Shown: positions 3,783-36,748 of the stretch, in pieces
Layout: each line of letters begins with the position of its first letter
Position numbering within the stretch: the stretch's first letter is position 1
IMG/VR virus record: IMGVR_UViG_3300042922_000643
Location: 1-64,000 of that record
Direction: 5' to 3' (one strand)
DNA: 64,000 bases
The notes under the pieces: model-generated
Seen by the model: only the letters and a program-made list of their open reading frames with translations
Databases searched by the model: none
What the model was told of the DNA's origin: nothing
Translations under genes and position numbers: made by a program

Positions 3783-4022
3783 ATGAAGAAGATTGGCCAT
3801 TTTCTGCTTAGGAATATACACTGGGGATTTATTGCTTGTATGATTTACTGGATATTTAACGGAATCCAGGTGATTAGAGGAGAATGGGTCTTTGACAAAG
3901 GAGATTCTGTATTCTCATGTATTATGGTAGCTCTCTTCTTTGCACAGGCCACTGTTCAACACCTTAGAGATATCAGACGTAATCCTGAGTGGTATGGCAA
4001 AGTAACAAAACGGGATGTATAA
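3783..4022 (+). CDS. Small membrane protein (2 TM)
   Basis: Two hydrophobic segments; RBS. Confidence 0.6.
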   Translation: MKKIGHFLLRNIHWGFIACMIYWIFNGIQVIRGEWVFDKGDSVFSCIMVALFFAQATVQHLRDIRRNPEWYGKVTKRDV

Positions 4023-4058
4023 TTCAACTACCATCATTGACGAACAGTAGGTGATACT

Positions 4059-4304
4059 ATGCGTGCAAGAGGCGAAAAACATTATAAAGCTGTTTTGACC
4101 GATATGCAAGTAGCCATCATACGGGAAATGATAAACGACGGTATTCGTTTGAACGAAATCCAAGAAAACTTTGGTATTTCCAGAAGTGTTCTTCATAGTA
4201 TTAGTGCGAATTTTAGCTGGAAACATATTGCGCCACCTTCTCGTGCAAAAAAAGGTCGTGCGGATGGTCGATTGAGAGAAAAAGAAACTTCAGAAAACCC
4301 ATAA
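4059..4304 (+). CDS. HTH protein resembling the C-terminal DNA-binding module of phage HNH endonucleases
   Basis: RGEKHYKAVLTDMQVAIIR...IQENFGISRSVLHSI....SWKHI. Confidence 0.6.
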   Translation: MRARGEKHYKAVLTDMQVAIIREMINDGIRLNEIQENFGISRSVLHSISANFSWKHIAPPSRAKKGRADGRLREKETSENP

Positions 4305-4677
4305 AGGAGATTCTAGTATGTTTAAACCAAATGTACATTTGAAGTATGTCATGGAAGTAGAAGATCTTCTTATAAAAGCTGTAGCTGCTCTCGATGAAGT
4401 ACAAAGTAAGGATATACTTGATGGTCGCGCTCAATATGCTATTAGCCAAATCCAAAAAATGATTCATGCAGTAGATCACGCCATCATTTCAGAACGTTAT
4501 GTTATGATGAATACGTTTGAAGCTGCAAAAGATAACCAGAAAGAATTATTAAATCGATCTGAACAACAACGTTTAGAACGTCTTGAAGGTATTAAAGAAA
4601 GAGCAAAAGAAGAAGGTAGCACTTATATTAGGTAAAATTTCTGGGTGGCGGTATGTTCTATCCAGGCATCGGTGCAT

Positions 4678-4748
4678 GGGGTAGGTAGCCCAAGTGAGAG
4701 GCGGCCTGACAAGGGAGGAGATGGCGGCGAAAACCCGCCCCTACCCCT
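4678..4748 (+). ncRNA. tRNA-like RNA A (no anticodon loop)
   Basis: Acceptor GGGGTAGG/CCTACCCC, then TA, D-arm GCC-CAAGTGAGA-GGC, CCT-GACA-AGG mini-hairpin, T-like arm GGCGG-CGAAAAC-CCGCC stacked on the acceptor; followed by a T-run. Confidence 0.6.
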
Positions 4749-4785
4749 ATACTTTTTTTATAGAAGTAGCACTACATAATGGGAG

Positions 4786-5121
4786 GTGAGATCCATGCAA
4801 AAACTTATTCGTGACAATGAAAAATGGATCATCGAAGAGTTACACGGCAAAGAAGCATACACTCGAACTATTGACGATGATACTTCTTTCATCTATGAAG
4901 GCACTAGAAAGCTTCTTCTTGATGCAGGAGAGTACGCAAGATCCAAAGATGTCTGTGAAAATTTGGAGAAGCTTGCAGATATTCTTGAGATTGTATATGC
5001 ATTAGGTGCTGCAAGCGGATTTTCTCCTGAGTTATTGGATGAAACAAGACAGAGCAAAGCAAAAACATACGGTCGATTTGATAAGAGGATCTTTCTTGTC
5101 GGAATTGATAACGGTCAATAA
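4786..5121 (+). CDS. Phosphoribosyl-ATP pyrophosphohydrolase / MazG-like NTP pyrophosphatase
   Basis: KLIRD N-terminus; LADILEIVYAL; K...GRFDKRIFL C-terminus. Confidence 0.7.
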   Translation: MRSMQKLIRDNEKWIIEELHGKEAYTRTIDDDTSFIYEGTRKLLLDAGEYARSKDVCENLEKLADILEIVYALGAASGFSPELLDETRQSKAKTYGRFDKRIFLVGIDNGQ

Positions 5122-9310: not shown

Positions 9311-9952
9311 ATGACTGTTTTGAAATATTATATTCACAGCCTGACGAAGAATACGTACTTTACTCTCGATTCTTTTGAAGAGATGATTCAATGGTTTGCT
9401 CGTCAGAATAGGCCGAATCACCGTCAAATTTTTTACGGGAGTCATCCTTGGGAATATCGCCGCGAGGAATTGCCTATCAATCCAAAGATTCATCATTGGT
9501 CACTGTTCAATAGTGCGCTTGCAGAGATTGCAATGAATCCTACAGATGTTCGTCATCGGTATGATTGGGATGGAGCAGGTGGATACATTGCCGTCAGAGA
9601 CATTATGGTGACTGATGAACTGAATCGAACCATTGATCCGCGGCATTACTGGGATAAGATCGCGACTACTGTTGTTAACTACACTTATAGAAGTAACATA
9701 CATCCGTATGTCTACCGCTTTGATCCTGTAGAACGCACGGGAAAGCGTCGCGGAGGACCTTCTTCTAAGCGTATTGCTACATTCCAAGAGCGAAAGCTCT
9801 CTTGCGATCCTGAAATCAAAGAATTTGTTCATCCTAAACGAAACATGATGAATCTTCCTAGTTCTTGGGATCAGCATCCTCGTAATACAAACCACTGCTG
9901 GAAAGCAAAAAAACTAAAGAAGCAGTGGATGAAACACCTAAAAGGAGCTTAA
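9311..9952 (+). CDS. Hypothetical protein with basic C-terminus
   Basis: AAGGAG RBS; 213-aa ORF. Confidence 0.7.
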   Translation: MTVLKYYIHSLTKNTYFTLDSFEEMIQWFARQNRPNHRQIFYGSHPWEYRREELPINPKIHHWSLFNSALAEIAMNPTDVRHRYDWDGAGGYIAVRDIMVTDELNRTIDPRHYWDKIATTVVNYTYRSNIHPYVYRFDPVERTGKRRGGPSSKRIATFQERKLSCDPEIKEFVHPKRNMMNLPSSWDQHPRNTNHCWKAKKLKKQWMKHLKGA

Positions 9953-10151
9953 TGAAATGCAAACCGCCGTATTCGATGCCAATGGTAACATTGTCACTGA
10001 GGGAGATTTTGTACGCTCCCTAAAAACAGGATTTACCTGGGTTGTACTGGGAAGCAATGAAGTGATTGTTTCCTTAGCTTATGGCCCCATACAAGAAGCA
10101 GTCCGTCTTGAGGTATTCCGCACTGAATTTGTGCTTGAAAAATAGAGCATG

Positions 10152-17840: not shown

Positions 17841-17942
17841 ATCACACCAGTTTTTCCCTGTTTGGATTATGATGAAAGTCCACTATATTTTTATCTAGTA
17901 TATAAACTTTCATCATATAATCCCAAAGAAGAGGTGTCCGAG

Positions 17943-19901
17943 ATGCACGAAAAGCACGTTGAATCACTACATCAAATGGCAGAAAACATTATCCAAGTTC
18001 AAGATGTTGATCTGGCAAGAGAAAACGCTAACCTGAATGGGGAGTCTTTCTCTGGCAAGATGAGCAAGATGGGTAGTGAGTTCTCCAAATGGTATGCAAA
18101 ATCGGTAATGATGCCAAGCAAATTGGTCAACGCCATTGACGAAAACTTTGTTTATGTTCATGATTTAGACCAATATGTATTAGGTACTACCAATTGTATC
18201 TTTATACCGTTTGGAAAGCTTCTTGAACGCGGATTTAATACAGGGAATGGTAGTGTACGGCCACCGAATTCGATCATGACAGCAATGTCTTTGGTCGCCA
18301 TCATCTTTCAGTCTCAACAGAACTCTCAATACGGCGGAGTCTCAGGAAACAAAATTGATTGGGACCTTGCTCCGTATGTAGACAAATCTTTTGCAAAGCA
18401 TTTCCTGGTAGGACTAGAGTTCCTGGAAGAAACTCTGCCACATCCTTTCACTATAGAAAACAAAGCTGACCTTACGTTCGACAATGCAATGCTTCGCGCT
18501 GTGTGCCCTAAGGCTTTTTCATATGCAGAAAAGCTGACTATCAATGAAACAAACCAAGCCGCCGAGAGTATGATCCACAATTTGAATACAATGTCGAGTC
18601 GTGCTGGTGGACAGATTCCTTTCACTAGTATCAACTATGGAACATGTACTTCACCTCAAGGGCGATTGGTTATCCGTGCAATCTTAAGAGCAACCATGAA
18701 TGGACTTGGGAATGGAGAAACTCCGATTTTCCCGCAACATATTTTCAAATGTAAAAAAGGTGTGAACCAATCTACAGAAGATCCAAACTATGATCTGTTC
18801 CTCGAAGCAATTGAGTGTTCGTCGAAGCGTCTTTACCCTAACTTTGCGAATATTGATGCACCATTCAATCTTCAATACTATAACCCCGAAGATCCTGATA
18901 CAGAGTTTGCAACAATGGGCTGCCGTACACGCGTAATTTCTGATCGCTTCGGCTACAACCATCTTTCAGGTAAGGGAAACCTTTCTTTCAACACTCTGAA
19001 TCTAGTAAAGCTAGGGCTGGAATATGGTATCGCTTTAGGAGAACGTTCAGAAGCGGACTTAGAAAGTTTCTATTACGAACTCTATCACTATATGGATCTA
19101 TCTTTAGAAGGTTTGATTCATCGCTTTGAGATTCAAGCGGAGCAACAAGCCAAGGCCTCTGATTTCATGATGCGTGAAGGTGTCTGGGAAAATGGCGAGA
19201 AGCTTGAACCAGAAGATAAGGTTCGTGAACATATCAAACATGGTTCCTTGTCTATTGGTTTTATTGGAGTCGCTGAGTGTATGAAGGCACTCTTTGGCAA
19301 GCACCATGGTGAGGACCCTGAAGTAATGAAGTTTGCAGTTGATCTCATCGATACGATTCGACAATATTGTGATCGTAAATCAGACGAGCACAACCTGAAC
19401 ATTACACTATTTGCTACACCTGCTGAAGGACTATCTGGTAAGTTTACCAAGAGTGATCGTCAGTACTATGGAAACATAGAAGGCGTAACAGACCGTGAAT
19501 ACTATACAAATTCGTTCCATATCCCTGTATACTACGATATGAAAGCTGCTGATAAGATTCGCGCCGAAGCACCGTTCCATGAACTGTGTAACGCAGGAGC
19601 TATCTCTTATATCGAACTAGACGGAAACGCACGGAACAATCAACTGGCTTTCTTAAAGATCGTACAGTACGCATTGTCTCAAAACATCAGTTATTTTAGC
19701 GTTAATCATCCCGTAGATCGATGCCCTTCCTGCGGCTACGAGGGCTCTATTGGAGACACTTGTCCGAACTGTGCAGCAGATGAATCTACTCATCCTTTCA
19801 GACGCTTACGCCGTGTCACAGGCTACCTGACAGGAGACTATACGACTCGATTCAATAGTGCGAAACAAGCTGAGGTTAGAGATCGGGTTAAACATCTATG
19901 A
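17943..19901 (+). CDS. nrdD: Anaerobic (class III) ribonucleotide reductase, without ATP cone
   Basis: ENAN, YVHDLD, TTNC, TMGCRT, TPAEGL, YYTNSFH, CPSC/CPNC, RRVTGY glycyl-radical motif; ATG17943 after GAGGTG. Confidence 0.96.
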   Translation: MHEKHVESLHQMAENIIQVQDVDLARENANLNGESFSGKMSKMGSEFSKWYAKSVMMPSKLVNAIDENFVYVHDLDQYVLGTTNCIFIPFGKLLERGFNTGNGSVRPPNSIMTAMSLVAIIFQSQQNSQYGGVSGNKIDWDLAPYVDKSFAKHFLVGLEFLEETLPHPFTIENKADLTFDNAMLRAVCPKAFSYAEKLTINETNQAAESMIHNLNTMSSRAGGQIPFTSINYGTCTSPQGRLVIRAILRATMNGLGNGETPIFPQHIFKCKKGVNQSTEDPNYDLFLEAIECSSKRLYPNFANIDAPFNLQYYNPEDPDTEFATMGCRTRVISDRFGYNHLSGKGNLSFNTLNLVKLGLEYGIALGERSEADLESFYYELYHYMDLSLEGLIHRFEIQAEQQAKASDFMMREGVWENGEKLEPEDKVREHIKHGSLSIGFIGVAECMKALFGKHHGEDPEVMKFAVDLIDTIRQYCDRKSDEHNLNITLFATPAEGLSGKFTKSDRQYYGNIEGVTDREYYTNSFHIPVYYDMKAADKIRAEAPFHELCNAGAISYIELDGNARNNQLAFLKIVQYALSQNISYFSVNHPVDRCPSCGYEGSIGDTCPNCAADESTHPFRRLRRVTGYLTGDYTTRFNSAKQAEVRDRVKHL

Positions 19902-20392
19902 ACATTTGCGGATACTACCCAGAAAGCATTAACGAGGGTCACGGCTTACGAGCCGTGATCTTTATTAGTGGTTGTAAACATGCCTGTAAGGGTTGCTTCA
20001 GTGAGAAAACATGGGGCTTCGATGTGGGAGAGCCACTAGATCTTGCAAAGCAATTGGAGCTAATTGAGGATATGAATAATAATGGTCTTCTCCAAGGAGT
20101 TACATTCTGTGGAGGAGATCCTTTTTTCTCTGCTAAAGAGCTTGTTCCATTCGTTGAAATGATACGAGAGCTGGCACCCCATCTAGATGTATGGTCTTAC
20201 ACAGGGTTTACTTTTGAAGCTCTTATTAAAAATAAAGAAATGTCTAGCTTCTTAAGCCTTTGTGATGTTATTATAGATGGAAAATACGTCCAAGATAAAA
20301 AGGATTTAACCTTACTTTATCGCGGTTCTTCTAATCAGAGAATCATAAATGTCCGCGCCAGCTTACAATCAGGTCAAGTTGTCGAACTATAA
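19898..20392 (+). CDS. nrdG: Class III RNR activating radical SAM enzyme
   Basis: GLRAVIFISGCKHACKGC, GGDPF, YTGF, RGSSNQR; overlaps nrdD. Confidence 0.95.
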   Translation: MNICGYYPESINEGHGLRAVIFISGCKHACKGCFSEKTWGFDVGEPLDLAKQLELIEDMNNNGLLQGVTFCGGDPFFSAKELVPFVEMIRELAPHLDVWSYTGFTFEALIKNKEMSSFLSLCDVIIDGKYVQDKKDLTLLYRGSSNQRIINVRASLQSGQVVEL

Positions 20393-31314: not shown

Positions 31315-32091
31315 ATGGGTTCTAAGCATTCAGGGCGAGCCTATCGTTTCCTTGTACCTATTGTGATTATTGTAGTTCTATTAATTGCATGGGGCACTAG
31401 AGAACATAGTCTAAGCCAGAAGCACCAGTCTACGATCTCTTCCCTTAAATCAGAACTAAGTAGCAAGGGTCAGGTTATTGAGAATAAGAATATCCTCATT
31501 CAGCAGAAACAAGCTGAACTTGATCTCCAGTCTTCGCTGCTGGAACAACAGCAAAAGAAGCTAGACAAAAGACAGGCTATTATCGAGCTGAATATTAAGG
31601 AGGCGCAAGTCTCCGATAATAAGATCGAAGCTCAAAAGAAGACTATCAATCAATTGCAAAAGAAGTTGTCTTCGGAACAGTCCAATACCAGTTTGAAAGC
31701 CAAGCCAACCACTGTAAATGCTACTACAGTCTCGGCAAAAGCATCAGGAAGCTTTCAATCTGGATGGACTGCAACTTACTATTCGCTAAGCGTGGCTTCC
31801 ACTGGGAAGAGACCAGGTCACCCTGGCTACGGAATCACGGCTAGCGGACGTAAGGTAGTAGACGGTGTTACGATTGCCGTTGATCCACGATACATTCCTT
31901 TGGGAACTTGGATCGAAATTAAAATGCCTAACGGCGAAGTCATCAAACGAAGAGCCGACGATACAGGCTCCGCCATTAAAGGACATAAGCTAGATATTTA
32001 TGTGGCTGGCGTCAGTGACTCATACATCTATCAAGAACTTGGTAAGAAACAAATCTCTATCCGTATTCTCGGAAAGGGAGAACTGAACTAA
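31315..32091 (+). CDS. Membrane-anchored coiled-coil plus 3D-domain cell-wall protein
   Basis: N-terminal TM; ATYY, GITASG, IAVDPRYIPLGT, ADDTGSAIKGHKLDIY. Confidence 0.9.
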   Translation: MGSKHSGRAYRFLVPIVIIVVLLIAWGTREHSLSQKHQSTISSLKSELSSKGQVIENKNILIQQKQAELDLQSSLLEQQQKKLDKRQAIIELNIKEAQVSDNKIEAQKKTINQLQKKLSSEQSNTSLKAKPTTVNATTVSAKASGSFQSGWTATYYSLSVASTGKRPGHPGYGITASGRKVVDGVTIAVDPRYIPLGTWIEIKMPNGEVIKRRADDTGSAIKGHKLDIYVAGVSDSYIYQELGKKQISIRILGKGELN

Positions 32092-32861: not shown

Positions 32862-33392
32862 ATGGCCGTACCAGGCAGCCTGTGGGTTCAAGGGACCCAG
32901 CTTCGTTTTACGAGTCAAAGCGGAGTCAACTTTGCATATGAAGGTACTTATAGTAGCTCGCCTGCTGGAGCTAAACCAGGCAGCTCATGGATCGAAGGCG
33001 ATAACTTCGCTTATATCGACCAGTATGGTTCTAAAAGACTCGTTATTAATTATACTGCTACTAATATTCCCGCCGCAGTTGCAGGCAGCTTATGGATTTA
33101 TGGCAATTATCTTTATTGGATTAACACTAATAAGAATAAAACCTACGGACATGGAGATGCAACTCATCAGAATACAAGCTATAATGATGGTAGTTATAAC
33201 GATTATAATAATTCATCAACATCCCATGGTGATTCTACGGTAACTTTCCAAGATTCGCCGACACATGGTAATCATGTACCCTACCATGCGGACTGGCCTG
33301 CTTCACATACGGATAGCTATAACTATCAAGATACACACAACAATAGCTACCATACGGATACTCCACATGCTGATTATCCTATTCAAGTGTAG
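32862..33392 (+). CDS. Putative radical-SAM substrate: three GS(L/S)W repeats plus a tail with 14 aromatic-X-(D/N) motifs
   Basis: Repeats PGSLWVQG / PGSSWIEG / AGSLWIYG at 35-aa spacing; tail HGD,HQN,YND,YND,YNN,HGD,FQD,HGN,HAD,HTD,YQD,HNN,HTD,HAD. Confidence 0.75.
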   Translation: MAVPGSLWVQGTQLRFTSQSGVNFAYEGTYSSSPAGAKPGSSWIEGDNFAYIDQYGSKRLVINYTATNIPAAVAGSLWIYGNYLYWINTNKNKTYGHGDATHQNTSYNDGSYNDYNNSSTSHGDSTVTFQDSPTHGNHVPYHADWPASHTDSYNYQDTHNNSYHTDTPHADYPIQV

Positions 33393-33407
33393 GGAGGAGA
33401 GAACACA

Positions 33408-34628
33408 TTGACAACAGAAGTGAGACCTATGGGTGTTTCGTGTCCTTTAAAATGTGTTTATTGCTATCAAGAACCCCAGAGGGTTGCGGGAAATACTAAT
33501 GCAAAATATGATTTGGCGAAGATGATTCAGGAGATCTCAAAGACTCGAACAAAGAATATTAATTTCTTTGGTGGCGAGATCTTAATGATGCCTATAGAAG
33601 ATCTAGAGGTACTGCTGGCTTACGCTCATGTTAAGTTCGGTGGATCAGGTGTTCAAACCAGCGGATCTATCATGAGAGATGAACATATTGAACTCTTCAA
33701 AAAGTACAATGTTCAGCTGGGCTTCTCCATTGACGGTCCTAACGAGCTAAACAGTCTCCGAGTTCCACGCAATCCAAAGACTCCTATTGAAAGTACAACG
33801 GATAATACAATGAAATATATCAAGCTATCAAAAGAAGCTGGGCTTGATGTAGGCCTTATTATTACCCTTCATAGAGAAAACTCTACTCCAGAACGTATTC
33901 CACGGTTGTTTAATTTTATCAAGTGGTTATGGGATCTTGGTATTCGTAGCGGGAATATTCATACTCTAGAAATTGAATCTACAATGCCGAACCACGACTT
34001 TGTATTGACACAAGAAGAGAACATCTGGGCTTACACCCAACTTGCCGAGTTCTTTAAAACGCTTCCTGACCATGGATGGAATCCTTTCGCAGAGATTAAA
34101 GACTTACTGATGGGTAACGATCAAAAAACTCTTTGTTATTGGCACCGATGCGATCCATTGAATACTCAAGCTGTCCACGGAATCGAAGGTGACGGTGCAA
34201 TCTCTAACTGTGGACGAGCAAATAAAGAAGGAATTGACTGGGTCAAAGCTCCTGATAATTATTATGCAAGATACATCAGCTTCTATCATACGCCTCAAGA
34301 TATGGGTGGCTGTAATGGATGCCGCTTCTGGACAGTATGCGGAGGAAGTTGCCCAGGTGAATCCGATCAGGGGGATTTCAGAAATAAAACAACACATTGC
34401 TCTACTCAGAAAGCAATACTTTCCTATTATGAAAAAGAACTTATTGATGAAGGCAAGCTACCCATTACGACATCGCCTTTGCTTCCTCTTGTTGAACAGC
34501 TCGTTCTTAATGGTCTTGAAAGAGGAGAGAACTTATATCTTAATACTGTTATTTCAATGATTGAAGAGATGAGAACAGAAGTCATCCAACTGGAAGTCGT
34601 AGAGGAGGATATCAATGAAACTACTTGA
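33408..34628 (+). CDS. Radical SAM/SPASM peptide or protein maturase
   Basis: CPLKCVYC, FFGGE, QTSG, FSIDGP; SPASM cysteines CYWHRC, NC, CNGC-x5-C-x3-C-x15-C. Confidence 0.92.
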   Translation: MTTEVRPMGVSCPLKCVYCYQEPQRVAGNTNAKYDLAKMIQEISKTRTKNINFFGGEILMMPIEDLEVLLAYAHVKFGGSGVQTSGSIMRDEHIELFKKYNVQLGFSIDGPNELNSLRVPRNPKTPIESTTDNTMKYIKLSKEAGLDVGLIITLHRENSTPERIPRLFNFIKWLWDLGIRSGNIHTLEIESTMPNHDFVLTQEENIWAYTQLAEFFKTLPDHGWNPFAEIKDLLMGNDQKTLCYWHRCDPLNTQAVHGIEGDGAISNCGRANKEGIDWVKAPDNYYARYISFYHTPQDMGGCNGCRFWTVCGGSCPGESDQGDFRNKTTHCSTQKAILSYYEKELIDEGKLPITTSPLLPLVEQLVLNGLERGENLYLNTVISMIEEMRTEVIQLEVVEEDINETT

Positions 34629-35559
34629 TTTTAGTATGCCACCATTTGCAAGAACGGTTTGGGCCTCTCAAGAAATAGAGAAGGAGTGGCGTCCCAAACT
34701 GGCTTTAGCCTCTCAAGCTTATGAGCGTTTAGAGTATGAAACGGTTGTTCATGGCCTTAGAGCCTGTACAACAGCACATTGTACTCCTGATGATATGGTT
34801 CGTCGGATTCAATTTTATGCAAAGAAAGGTCTTATGTATCATCCCTTACAGCAAGTAGGTGCTTATACAGGGTTCGCTCATACACACCCTCCAGTTATTC
34901 CAGGAAAACCTTGGACCTGGTTCGGTGTTGTAGCTAAAGACCCTCTTGATGCTTACACCTTTGCTGAGGCATCTGCATTGACAGAAGATTCCGCGGGTAA
35001 GGAAATAGATCACTCAACGATTGGCACTCTTCTTGGATACCCTGAATGCTGCCGAAAGTTCTTCACAGATGTATGGGCCGCGGGATATGTTGATCCTGTA
35101 TGGCAACAAGCAGAAAACTGTGAAGGTGAATACGTAGTGAAGAAAGAAGAGCATCTTATTCAGCTAAGCAAGGAGACTCCATGGGAGACTTCACCACTAC
35201 TGAGATACATTGGAGTACGTATCATGCCTCACATTCCATGCTCTCATGATTGTAAACCTTCTCTGGTTATCGCAAGAAGTTGGTTGGATCTTGGTAGAGA
35301 GTTGGCCATACCAGGCATGGAAGAGCTTGAGCAATTTCTTCGGATGCCAGTAGAATGGGATTGCTTGAAGGGGATAGCCTATGTGTCTACTCCAATCTTC
35401 AAGATTGAAACGAATTCCATGACATGTTATCCACGGCATGTTGTTCAAAAGGAAGGAACATTTAGACCAAAGAGTGGAGCAAAAGGACTGAAGTTTCCTT
35501 TTATTCCGCTAGGATCTGATAAGTTTGCTCACCTCTTTGGAGGAGGAAGCGGGTGCTAA
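34615..35559 (+). CDS. Cys/His-rich partner protein (GYPECC motif, tentatively DUF483-like)
   Basis: Overlaps the rSAM stop; IGTLLGYPECC, HIPCSHDC, AHTH. Confidence 0.65.
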   Translation: MKLLDFSMPPFARTVWASQEIEKEWRPKLALASQAYERLEYETVVHGLRACTTAHCTPDDMVRRIQFYAKKGLMYHPLQQVGAYTGFAHTHPPVIPGKPWTWFGVVAKDPLDAYTFAEASALTEDSAGKEIDHSTIGTLLGYPECCRKFFTDVWAAGYVDPVWQQAENCEGEYVVKKEEHLIQLSKETPWETSPLLRYIGVRIMPHIPCSHDCKPSLVIARSWLDLGRELAIPGMEELEQFLRMPVEWDCLKGIAYVSTPIFKIETNSMTCYPRHVVQKEGTFRPKSGAKGLKFPFIPLGSDKFAHLFGGGSGC

Positions 35560-35562
35560 TTC

Positions 35563-35808
35563 ATGTTTAAACAACGTTTATGGGATTGCCTTTTGGCAGT
35601 CCTTTCTTTTATTGTAGCAATAGTATTAATCATTGGTATAGCTTTTCTAGCTGTTTTCTTGTCAGACATCTATTGGTTTAAGATACTTGTAAGTACTGTT
35701 GTTATTCTTATCTTGTCCTTCGTTGTTATTATCGCTCTTTCACTGTTTGTTAACTGGCTGTTTATTGAACCATACAAACATTGGAAAGAAGAAAATAAAA
35801 ACAGATAG
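35563..35808 (+). CDS. Small membrane protein (2 TM)
   Basis: Highly hydrophobic; 3 nt after the previous stop. Confidence 0.65.
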   Translation: MFKQRLWDCLLAVLSFIVAIVLIIGIAFLAVFLSDIYWFKILVSTVVILILSFVVIIALSLFVNWLFIEPYKHWKEENKNR

Positions 35809-35915: not shown

Positions 35916-36245
35916 ATGTTGATGAGATTGAGTTCGCAAAATGTAAGTAATGCTTTTATGACGTTCATGAAAGAGGCTCCTAAACAATACGAAGCTTGGC
36001 AAGAAATGATTATGAAACTTGACGTAGCAAGCGCACTTGTCAATAAGACAGAGGAGCTTGCCTATATTTCAGTTCTTGCCGCTGTTAGACTAGAAAGCGG
36101 TTTGGAGTTCCATGTAAAACAAGCAAAATCTTTTGGAGCTACGCGGGATGAAATCATTAGTGCAATTCTATTACCACTTCCCGCTGTTGGTAATGTAGCC
36201 ATTCAATCTCTACCAATCGCATTACAAGCTTACGATGTGTCATAA
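35916..36245 (+). CDS. Carboxymuconolactone decarboxylase (CMD/AhpD-like) family protein
   Basis: KTEELAYISVLAA...FHVKQAKSFGATRDEI. Confidence 0.8.
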   Translation: MLMRLSSQNVSNAFMTFMKEAPKQYEAWQEMIMKLDVASALVNKTEELAYISVLAAVRLESGLEFHVKQAKSFGATRDEIISAILLPLPAVGNVAIQSLPIALQAYDVS

Positions 36246-36707: not shown

Positions 36708-36721
36708 TATCTACTTGCGCA

Positions 36722-36748
36722 AAGAGGGGCCGAAAGGCCTCTTTTTTA
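36722..36748 (+). terminator. Intrinsic terminator
   Basis: GGCC-GAAA-GGCC hairpin followed by TCTTTTTT. Confidence 0.75.

Follow-up and report, generated by a model that had tools for sequence, protein, structure and literature searches.

Four described systems come closest to the locus discussed here. The first is the 'rSAM module' of the Thermus phages Cumys and phiMa, which are cultivable on T. thermophilus HB8 (Viruses 2024, PMC11437467). Its authors noted that a hypothetical protein, an rSAM protein and a DUF483-domain protein sit together in that order and that this synteny recurs in prophages. They proposed DNA modification as a guess, and they report homologs of the last two genes next to deazapurine DNA-modification genes in some cyanobacteria. 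The second is the group of triceptides, made by three-residue cyclophane-forming rSAM enzymes (XyeB, GrrM/OscB, FxsB, YhhB, HaaB, HtkB, ChlB). Here the substrates carry aromatic-X-X triads, and His-containing triads (HAA, HNR, HTK) are crosslinked from His-C2 to the Cbeta of residue 3, which is established chemistry for HaaB, YhhB and HtkB (PMC11499958). The third is the bacterial HXS antiphage system (HxsA-D; Nat Commun 2026, PMC13128918), in which radical SAM enzymes mature a protein effector with repeated His-x-Ser triads. The fourth is the anaerobic sulfatase-maturating enzyme, anSME, which lacks an RRE, has two fully Cys-ligated auxiliary clusters, and acts on a protein substrate by Cbeta-H abstraction.

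This work concerns three coupled genes in a jumbo phage. We analysed the first 64,000 nucleotides of IMG/VR record IMGVR_UViG_3300042922_000643, which we call the window. The window is phage: it holds NrdD, helicases, primase, a UvsX-like recombinase, ThyA and PhoH, and it matches a 251.5-kb IMG/VR contig. A search of the phage collection for near-identical DNA found nothing. An initial annotation made from sequence alone had proposed that the three genes are a radical SAM/SPASM cassette with an aromatic-x-(Asp/Asn) substrate, a candidate triceptide-like cyclophane system. The sequence features it described are all present. Its interpretation is partly supported, and we will argue below which parts hold and which do not.

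Anatomy of the three genes

The features are as follows.
32862..33392 (+): gene A, a 176-aa substrate candidate with a folded N-terminal domain (predicted), an HxD-type array and a C-terminal cap
32862..33149 (+): A residues 1-96, predicted all-beta domain built of three 'GSxW[VI]xGxxLxY' repeats
33150..33374 (+): A residues 97-171, array of 14 [H/Y/F]-x-[D/N] triads, acidic, with no K, R, E or C
33366..33389 (+): A residues 169-176, C-terminal cap 'HAD-YPIQV' (last triad plus P-x-x-V), shared by the short family members
33408..34628 (+): gene B, a radical SAM/SPASM enzyme of 406 aa with a TTG start, no N-terminal RRE and no HxD tail of its own
33441..33464 (+): B residues 12-19, CxxxCxxC radical SAM cluster motif
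34134..34400 (+): B residues 243-331, SPASM region with eight invariant Cys (C243, C248, C268, C302, C305, C311, C315, C331)
34615..35559 (+): gene C, a 314-aa DUF483-like partner protein without the methyltransferase domain found in many relatives
35035..35052 (+): C residues 141-146, 'GYPECC' signature with invariant C145 and C146
35239..35253 (+): C residues 209-213, 'CSHDC' (C209 nearly invariant, C213 invariant)

A and B are separated by a 15-nt gap, and B and C overlap by 14 nt. Each gene is preceded by a GGAGG-type ribosome-binding site. The TTG start of B and the ATG start of C are supported by homologs that align from residues 1-3. A promoter and terminator scan gave no informative internal signals.

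Residues 97-176 of A hold exactly 14 triads (HGD, HQN, YND, YND, YNN, HGD, FQD, HGN, HAD, HTD, YQD, HNN, HTD, HAD), as had been annotated. Shuffles of the same 80 residues give a mean of 4.7, and none of 100,000 reaches 14, p<1e-5. All 10 Asp residues have H/Y/F at -2, which was also seen in 0 of 100,000 shuffles. Spacing +2 is the only enriched spacing, with 14 cases against 5, 2 and 2 for spacings 1, 3 and 4. The 80-residue tail has no Lys, Arg or Glu. There is no tandem repeat at the DNA level, so the regularity exists only in the protein. In an AlphaFold2 model the N-terminal domain has pLDDT 93-98 with 11 strands, the array is predicted disordered with pLDDT below 50, and the last 10-residue block has pLDDT 88 with a short strand at 174-175. 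The N-terminal domain is conserved in 23 homologs, and the cap pattern is found in 31 of 67 array proteins, mostly the short forms. No Pfam, NCBIfam or PHROG family matches A, and Pfam and NCBIfam have no family for A-like proteins. Foldseek of the A model against the PDB gave no match at E<=0.001; a weak resemblance of the N-terminal domain to beta-hairpin cell-wall or glucan-binding repeats (E 0.2-0.7) was rejected as not significant. BFVD returned only one 342-aa viral protein, probably the Thermus phage homolog by length and 33% identity. A fixed-period solenoid can be rejected as well, because triad spacing varies from 3 to 9 across the arrays and the array is predicted disordered.

B matches the radical SAM family PF04055 at 7.5e-16. 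Cys 12, 16 and 19 and the eight further Cys are invariant in 27 homologs, and their spacing includes GX4C and the CX2CX5CX3C SPASM signature. No Pfam SPASM-domain hit was listed, so the assignment of B to the SPASM subgroup rests on the Cys pattern and the full-length match to anSME. C gives a weak hit to PF04467 and belongs to a family of 938 representative clusters at E<=1e-30. In about half of its relatives it is fused to a methyltransferase. Its model is confident (pLDDT 92), but Foldseek against the PDB gave no match at E<=0.001 and a sequence search of the PDB found nothing. C has no known fold. The four conserved Cys, recognised from 29 homologs, could form a metal site, which is an inference that we did not test. 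PADLOC has no defence-system model for A or C, and B hits only generic viperin models.

Conservation of the module across phages and mobile elements

The initial annotation had named a search of phage genomes for the same synteny and motif register as a way to check its proposal, and the module proves to be widespread. B and C co-occur in about 150 phage, prophage and mobile-element loci, and nearly every locus not cut by a contig end also encodes a protein ending in a triad array. The same three genes occur in a different mobile-element context (TrbC/TrbL/TraG) at 65%, 72% and 70% identity, and in phiMa and Cumys at 30%, 41% and 46% identity, where the A homolog has about 59 triads. The 'GYPECC' motif of C served as the search pattern that recovered 128 viral relatives. 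All 84 loci in the first set examined (80 found through C, plus L001-L004) contain B, and 67 distinct array proteins were found, mostly abutting B. A narrower C alignment searched against genome contigs returned a single genome, and the spread of the module in cellular genomes was not examined.

It had also been stated in advance that rSAM homologs lacking such a neighbour would count against the proposal. Among 78 viral loci anchored on B, 70 have C and 68 have an array, and the misses lie at contig ends except for one locus, L139. Two loci (L139 and another, L008) have B and C without a separate array gene. Other apparent exceptions resolve to arrays on the opposite strand, cut contigs, or a mis-called gene. 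It is important for annotation to realize that these arrays can be mis-called on the opposite strand, as in the locus L086. About 50 of 72 B homologs, the Thermus rSAM among them, carry their own HxD tail, which our model does not explain. This was missed in the initial annotation, as were the spread of the module, its earlier description in Thermus phages, the identity of C and the analogy to HXS.

A third point raised beforehand was whether the spacing is conserved among substrate homologs, and it is. Against a 65%-identical homolog, positions 1 and 3 of the triads are 26/28 identical while the middle residue is 5/14. Across 13,977 array residues, 97% of His residues have D/N at +2 and 88% of Asp residues have an aromatic residue at -2. 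There are only 24 aromatic-x-Glu cases despite 319 Glu, and only 7 Cys. Spacing between triads is variable, and 67 of 67 arrays exceed all 500 shuffles. The array proteins are 159-1,471 aa long with up to about 128 triads.

These properties bear on the idea that the His/Asp-rich tail is simply a metal-binding or low-complexity linker, for example a Zn/Ni/Fe-chelating fibre, with B and C acting on something else or only supplying metal or cofactor. His and Asp are classic metal ligands, the tail is predicted disordered, and the Cys of C could bind metal. However, generic chelation would tolerate Glu and variable His-to-acid spacing, and it does not explain the tight co-inheritance of three genes. 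We consider this reading improbable as an alternative, although the two ideas are compatible since crosslinked triads could be pre-organised chelators. A thioether reading of the sactipeptide, ranthipeptide or QhpD type was rejected because the arrays have almost no Cys.

In most phages the module lies among tail-fibre genes, and arrays occur at the C-termini of proteins of 700-1,471 aa with tail-fibre-like parts. This argues against A being a classical RiPP precursor, with the N-terminal domain as a leader and the array cut into small secreted cyclophane peptides. The multi-core repeat architecture does resemble multi-motif triceptide precursors. But no protease or exporter is present in the module in any context examined, some arrays lack the N-terminal domain, and a conserved C-terminal cap is present. 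We regard this reading as very unlikely. The earlier suggestion that the product is a stapled protein rather than a secreted peptide is supported to the extent that a modified protein is the more likely product.

The probable substrate and the candidate chemistry

We believe the best reading is that A, B and C form a self-contained protein-maturation module carried by phages and other mobile elements. In this view A is the substrate, a small folded beta domain followed by a flexible acidic string of triads, mostly His-x-Asp, and B acts directly on the triads without a leader-recognition domain. The most likely reaction would have B abstract a hydrogen from the beta-carbon of the Asp/Asn at position 3, after which the radical would couple to the aromatic ring at position 1 (C2 of His). 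That would give one three-residue macrocycle per triad, up to 14 in this protein. C would be an obligatory partner that probably presents the substrate or carries out a second step. The product would be a multiply stapled protein, which in most phages belongs to the tail-fibre gene region. What our analysis demonstrates is the anatomy, the co-inheritance of the three genes, the selection on triad positions 1 and 3, and the class of the enzyme; that A is the substrate, the nature of the crosslink, the role of C and the biological purpose are all inferences. We hold this reading with about even confidence. The chemistry is inferred only from the motif geometry and the enzyme class, since no experiment exists and neither a crosslink nor a loss of 2 Da per motif was measured here. 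It also counts against the reading that in this jumbo phage the module lies among replication genes, not tail genes.

The enzyme comparisons support part of this. Over its full length the nearest solved relative of B is anSME (family profile against 4k36, 1.6e-28, residues 2-344), which acts on a protein at a Cbeta-H, followed by cyclophane synthases. The solved triceptide synthase ChlB is matched over the rSAM core only. The best named families for the clade are DynA, anSME, AmcB, YhhB and GrrM/OscB, mostly aromatic-crosslinking maturases. However, B reaches no named family's threshold, and the whole clade stays below the cutoffs. The scores are 72.5 bits against a cutoff of 425 for AmcB, 50 against 445 for YhhB, 38.8 against 450 for XyeB and 38.7 against 310 for GrrM/OscB. 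B is not a member of XyeB, GrrM/OscB, FxsB, YhhB or any other named cyclophane-synthase family. A phylogeny of B with reference cyclophane synthases was not built. The initial annotation also stated that GrrM substrates use Asn/Asp at position 3, for which a literature search on GrrM motifs returned nothing useful. A formylglycine reading was rejected because Ser at position 2 is not conserved.

It is possible, though we favour it less, that A is the substrate of B and C but that the chemistry is not a triceptide-type C-C cyclophane. Possibilities include a His-N to Cbeta link as in dynobactin, a C-O link, an HXS-like +8 Da modification, a modification of Asp alone with His serving as recognition element, or epimerisation. 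DynA is the best-scoring named family for the clade, anSME-like enzymes oxidise rather than crosslink, and the one characterised His-x-Ser repeat system shows a +8 Da change, not the -2 Da of a simple crosslink, so related motifs can undergo other chemistry. Methyltransferase fusions show that further chemistry occurs in relatives, where methylation could follow. On the other side, the strict i/i+2 pairing of an aromatic residue with Asp/Asn and the exclusion of Glu are what a three-residue ring closure predicts, and a single-residue modification would not obviously need both positions.

The published suggestion is that the rSAM and the DUF483-like protein modify DNA or a nucleotide, in which case the repeat protein would be unrelated or only accessory. 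The reported cyanobacterial neighbourhoods favour it, as does the position of this module in a nucleotide-metabolism and replication region. We did not re-examine the cyanobacterial context. We nevertheless find this idea very unlikely, since B has the SPASM architecture typical of peptide and protein maturases, its nearest relatives act on proteins or peptides, the array gene is almost always present, B itself often carries HxD triads, and in most phages the module is in the tail-fibre region.

A bolder scenario is not excluded, although we consider it doubtful. Phages may staple their own structural proteins, mostly tail-fibre-associated ones, with a dedicated radical SAM enzyme, converting long His-x-Asp arrays into chains of tens to more than a hundred small macrocycles, a new class of protein material or adhesin. 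Alternatively, the product could be a phage-borne counterpart of the HXS effector that acts at the cell envelope during DNA entry or superinfection exclusion. C would then be a new type of rSAM partner or second enzyme. If the inference holds, radical SAM crosslinking extends from small secreted peptides to large phage proteins, with far more modification sites per chain than in any system we could find described. It would also give a first function to a DUF483-like family of roughly a thousand or more sequence clusters, and it would replace the guess of DNA modification for the Thermus phage module.

Comparison with described systems

The locus resembles the triceptide systems in its conserved aromatic-X-X triads and its SPASM-type rSAM, and these families are among the best-scoring named relatives of B. 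It differs in that the maturase belongs to none of the recognised families and in that the substrate is a protein with 14 to about 128 triads, not a short leader-core peptide released as a natural product. Asp/Asn at position 3 with His at position 1 is not among the characterised motifs we could confirm, and a literature search for HxD motifs with radical SAM enzymes returned nothing useful. A DUF483-like partner is unknown in triceptide clusters, and the setting here is phage structural genes.

Compared with anSME, B shares the absence of an RRE and a match over the whole length, but its TIGR03942 score of 53.6 bits is far below the cutoff of 349. No sulfatase was seen in the neighbourhood, and there is no C/S-x-P/A-x-R target motif.

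HXS is the closest characterised analogue. In both, a protein with an anchor domain plus repeated His-x-(small residue) triads is paired with radical SAM enzymology and a small or unknown partner protein, and the HXS product acts as a protein, not as a secreted peptide. HXS has five His-x-Ser triads in a basic context, two rSAMs (HxsB and HxsC) plus HxsD, a signal peptide and a peptidoglycan-binding domain, and it is a bacterial defence system. Here the triads are acidic His-x-Asp, up to more than 100, and aromatic-x-Ser occurs only 35 times in the 13,977 array residues. There is one rSAM, for which the HxsB model gives 36 bits against a cutoff of 370, and the partner is DUF483-like. A has no Pfam domain and no hydrophobic signal segment at its N-terminus, and the module is phage-encoded. 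If our inference holds, it would offer a His-x-Asp counterpart to the His-x-Ser effector.

The Thermus phage module is homologous gene by gene and has the same gene order (A by tblastn at 7e-8, B 41% identical to the Cumys rSAM at 2e-104, C 46% identical to the Cumys DUF483-domain protein at 2e-86). That description rests on synteny and never mentions the arrays; the word 'histidine' does not occur in its text. The Thermus A homolog has about 59 triads against 14 here, the Thermus rSAM carries its own HxD tail, and the Thermus module follows baseplate and tail-fibre genes, whereas here it lies in a replication region.

The cassette and its three genes

The window is part of a large phage genome that is densely packed with short same-strand genes. 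It encodes an NrdD-type ribonucleotide reductase, two helicases, a primase, a UvsX-like recombinase, thymidylate synthase and PhoH. The NrdD-type enzyme is an anaerobic reductase of 679 aa, and it is followed by a 164-aa ORF that could be its activase, a second radical SAM (rSAM) enzyme in the window, although we did not check this (the pair lies at 17862-20392). The rSAM gene of the cassette matches a 251.5-kb IMG/VR contig at 100%, while the GenBank phage collection holds no near-identical phage. The three ORFs reported in the initial annotation are present:

32862-33392, gene A, 176 aa
33408-34628, gene B, the rSAM gene, 406 aa, with a TTG start
34615-35559, gene C, 314 aa

A and B are separated by a 15-nt gap, B and C overlap by 14 nt, and each gene is preceded by a GGAGG-type site. 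No convincing terminator lies inside the cassette; the first strong one is at 36721-36746. Two genes upstream (31315-32091) lies a 258-aa protein with an N-terminal hydrophobic segment, a Gln/Lys-rich stretch that looks coiled-coil by eye, and a C-terminal 3D domain of the cell-wall-hydrolase type with a SpsC-like hit, but it is not conserved next to the module in L002, one of the other loci carrying these genes. Shortly downstream lie an 81-aa hydrophobic, probably membrane, protein (35563-35808) and then a small CMD/AhpD-like protein of the carboxymuconolactone decarboxylase family (35916-36245).

The motif observation in the initial annotation is confirmed. Residues 97-176 of A contain exactly the 14 aromatic-x-Asp/Asn triads it had counted. 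Shuffling the same 80 residues gives a mean of 4.7 triads and none of 100,000 shuffles reaches 14. All 10 Asp residues lie two positions after H/Y/F, which also never occurs in the shuffles, and only the +2 spacing is enriched. The tail has 10 His and 10 Asp but no Lys, Arg or Glu. There is no tandem repeat at the DNA level, so the pattern is maintained in the protein and is not the product of recent slippage.

AlphaFold2, run with 23 homologs, predicts a confident all-beta domain for residues 1-98 of A (pLDDT 93-98), built from three 'GSxW[VI]xGxxLxY' repeats. The array (101-165) is predicted to be disordered (pLDDT below 50). The last block of residues is confident again (pLDDT 88), with a short strand at 174-175; we did not check whether this end packs onto the folded domain. 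The predicted fold has no significant PDB match. B has the CxxxCxxC motif at residues 12-19, which leaves no room for an N-terminal RRE. It has eight further Cys, all invariant in 27 homologs, including GX4C and CX2CX5CX3C, and this is enough for two fully ligated auxiliary clusters. C matches Pfam DUF483 only weakly, through its 'GYPECC' segment. Invariant residues in 29 homologs include C145, C146 and C213 (C209 is nearly invariant), plus R49, D160 and W248. A four-Cys metal site is a reasonable inference, though metal binding was not examined. The model of C is confident (pLDDT 92), yet it has no PDB match at E<=0.001.

Distribution of the module and its arrays

A 65%-identical homolog of A lies on a 69-kb contig which carries the same A-B-C order (B 72%, C 70%) among conjugation-type genes (TrbC, TrbL, TraG) and an actin-like partition gene. 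None of the window's flanking genes is there. The three genes therefore move as a unit. Thermus phages phiMa and Cumys carry the same three genes (30%, 41% and 46% identity) directly after their baseplate and tail-fibre genes, and their A homologs are 342-343 aa with about 59 H-x-D triads.

A search for the same synteny in phage genomes had been proposed beforehand, as had the criterion that homologous rSAM genes should not occur without such a neighbour; we looked at the neighbourhoods from both sides. A search of IMG/VR with a C alignment found 128 relatives, of which 80 loci were retrieved, and all 84 loci, these 80 and L001-L004, contain a B homolog. Among them 67 distinct proteins have at least 10 triads in an 80-residue window. 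They usually abut B, are 159-1,471 aa long, and hold up to about 128 triads. A second set of 78 viral loci was anchored on B instead; C was found in 70 and an array in 68, and the misses lie at contig ends, except in locus L139. Other apparent exceptions could be accounted for. L022, L040 and L074 have arrays on the opposite strand, and L035, L046 and L058 are cut by contig ends. In L086 the public gene call had taken the wrong strand: the called gene (4200-4766, minus strand) lies opposite to an array gene at 3957-4805 on the plus strand, the array reading as V-x-V on the other strand, and such arrays may be missed or mis-called elsewhere. Two loci, L008 and L139, have B and C without a separate array gene, and in both of these B itself ends in H-x-D triads.

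There is variation in how the genes are arranged. The Chengkuizengella axinellae genome (L085:4366-5689) carries two array genes in tandem before B and C, next to a tail-fibre-like gene; the first has the N-terminal repeat domain and the second starts almost directly with the array. In locus L089 (5067-9332) the partner genes are tandemly duplicated, with two DUF483-like genes followed by two rSAM genes and then an A-like gene at 9335-10003, all downstream of a tape-measure gene. Two homologs of B (L040:3938-5992 and L044:2662-5178) are interrupted by an intein with a LAGLIDADG homing endonuclease. Many C homologs of about 440-495 aa (L031:5995-7440, L051:6001-7473, L067:6001-7332 and others, and the entry P0077) are DUF483-like domains fused to a C-terminal class I SAM methyltransferase. 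The window's C has no such domain and no methyltransferase gene is adjacent. The C family has 938 representative clusters at E<=1e-30 in a library of 1.84 billion representatives.

The 67 array proteins provide 13,977 array residues. Position 1 is His in 81% of triads, the rest being Tyr, Phe or Trp. Position 3 is Asp in 82% and Asn in 18%, and position 2 is mostly Ser, Thr, Gly or Ala. Of all His residues 97% have Asp/Asn at +2, and 88% of Asp residues have an aromatic residue at -2. Glu is almost excluded from position 3 (24 cases among 319 Glu residues), and Cys is virtually absent (7 residues). The distance between successive triads varies (3, 4, 5, 6, 7 and 9 are all common, with a mode of 5). 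All 67 arrays exceed 500 of 500 shuffles. Conservation of the spacing among substrate homologs was another point on which the idea had been staked in advance, and here it holds: between the window's A and its 65% homolog, positions 1 and 3 are 26/28 identical and 28/28 conserved in class, while the middle position is 5/14 identical and the other tail positions 26/47 (Fisher p = 6e-4). Selection therefore acts on an aromatic residue and an Asp/Asn held exactly two residues apart, and the carboxylate or amide side chain must have the Asp length.

The genes immediately upstream of the module in other phages are dominated by tail-fibre, tail, collagen-like minor tail and virion structural PHROG families. 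Some long array carriers have tail-fibre-type parts (Gly_rich_2, phrog_863 and phrog_7809), and other loci follow the tape-measure gene. Arrays run to the very C-terminus, short forms ending in 'HxD-x-P-x-x-V-G' and long forms in 'H-x-D-S-E/Q-Y/V/L'. No protease or exporter is part of the module in any context examined. This fits a modified protein, often a virion-associated one, better than a secreted peptide. In the present jumbo phage the module lies among replication genes instead, so a structural role is not shown for this phage. The biological purpose of the product is open; it could serve in stiffening or in protease- and heat-proofing of a fibre, in metal binding, in adhesion, or in an envelope-level function analogous to the HXS system.

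Enzyme class, candidate chemistry and known systems

Several chemistries can be set aside. Thioether formation needs Cys, and the arrays have almost none. Formylglycine formation needs a conserved Ser or Cys, and there is none. A rigid solenoid repeat does not fit the variable spacing and the predicted disorder. What remains invariant is an aromatic ring and an Asp/Asn beta-carbon two residues apart. This is the geometry on which triceptide synthases act, and His-C2 to Cbeta links on HAA, HNR and HTK triads are established (PMC11499958). The most economical model has B abstracting the Cbeta hydrogen of Asp/Asn, followed by coupling of the radical to the ring at position 1. It is important to realize that this is inference, since the chemistry has not been tested. 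The only characterised His-x-small-residue repeat system, HXS, shows a +8 Da change of unknown chemistry on an SHRSS motif (PMC13128918), so other outcomes are possible. C is an obligatory partner. It is present in essentially every locus, but its role is unknown; substrate presentation, electron transfer and a second step are all candidates. The model also leaves one feature of B unexplained. About 50 of 72 distinct B homologs, among the loci L003-L084, end in their own short H-x-D tail, typically 'HGDxPHGDHTD' (for example L004:6026-7276 and L031:4670-5998), and it could be a docking tag, a self-substrate or a metal site. The window's B and its closest relatives lack it.

The interpretation offered in the initial annotation, a triceptide-like cyclophane system, is supported only in part. 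What the analysis itself establishes is the anatomy of the cassette, including the motif, the co-inheritance of the three genes, the selection on triad positions 1 and 3, and the enzyme class; the pairing of substrate and enzyme and the idea of a stapled protein are well supported by the comparative evidence, while the bond that B would make is a matter of inference, although one that can be tested directly. Membership in the triceptide families is not borne out. The initial annotation also stated that GrrM substrates use Asn/Asp at position 3, which our literature search did not confirm.

The Thermus phage work (Viruses 2024, PMC11437467) described the three-gene 'rSAM module' and its recurrence in prophages, and suggested DNA modification, but it does not mention histidine or a repeat protein. 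No paper in the literature we could search links H-x-D repeats to radical SAM enzymes, and no Pfam, NCBIfam or PADLOC model covers A. A repeat-motif substrate matured by a radical SAM enzyme is already known as a kind of system, and we regard the present one as a variant of it. Single-sequence and profile searches place B among SPASM maturases. The family profile matches anSME over its whole length (E 1.6e-28), the triceptide synthase ChlB over the rSAM core only (1.7e-18), and then CteB. Against NCBIfam, all 27 clade members hit DynA, anSME, AmcB, TIGR04083 and YhhB, and 25 hit GrrM/OscB, but every score is far below the curated cutoff. B is therefore not a member of any named family but a separate clade, one that neighbours the protein-modifying anSME and the aromatic-crosslinking maturases.
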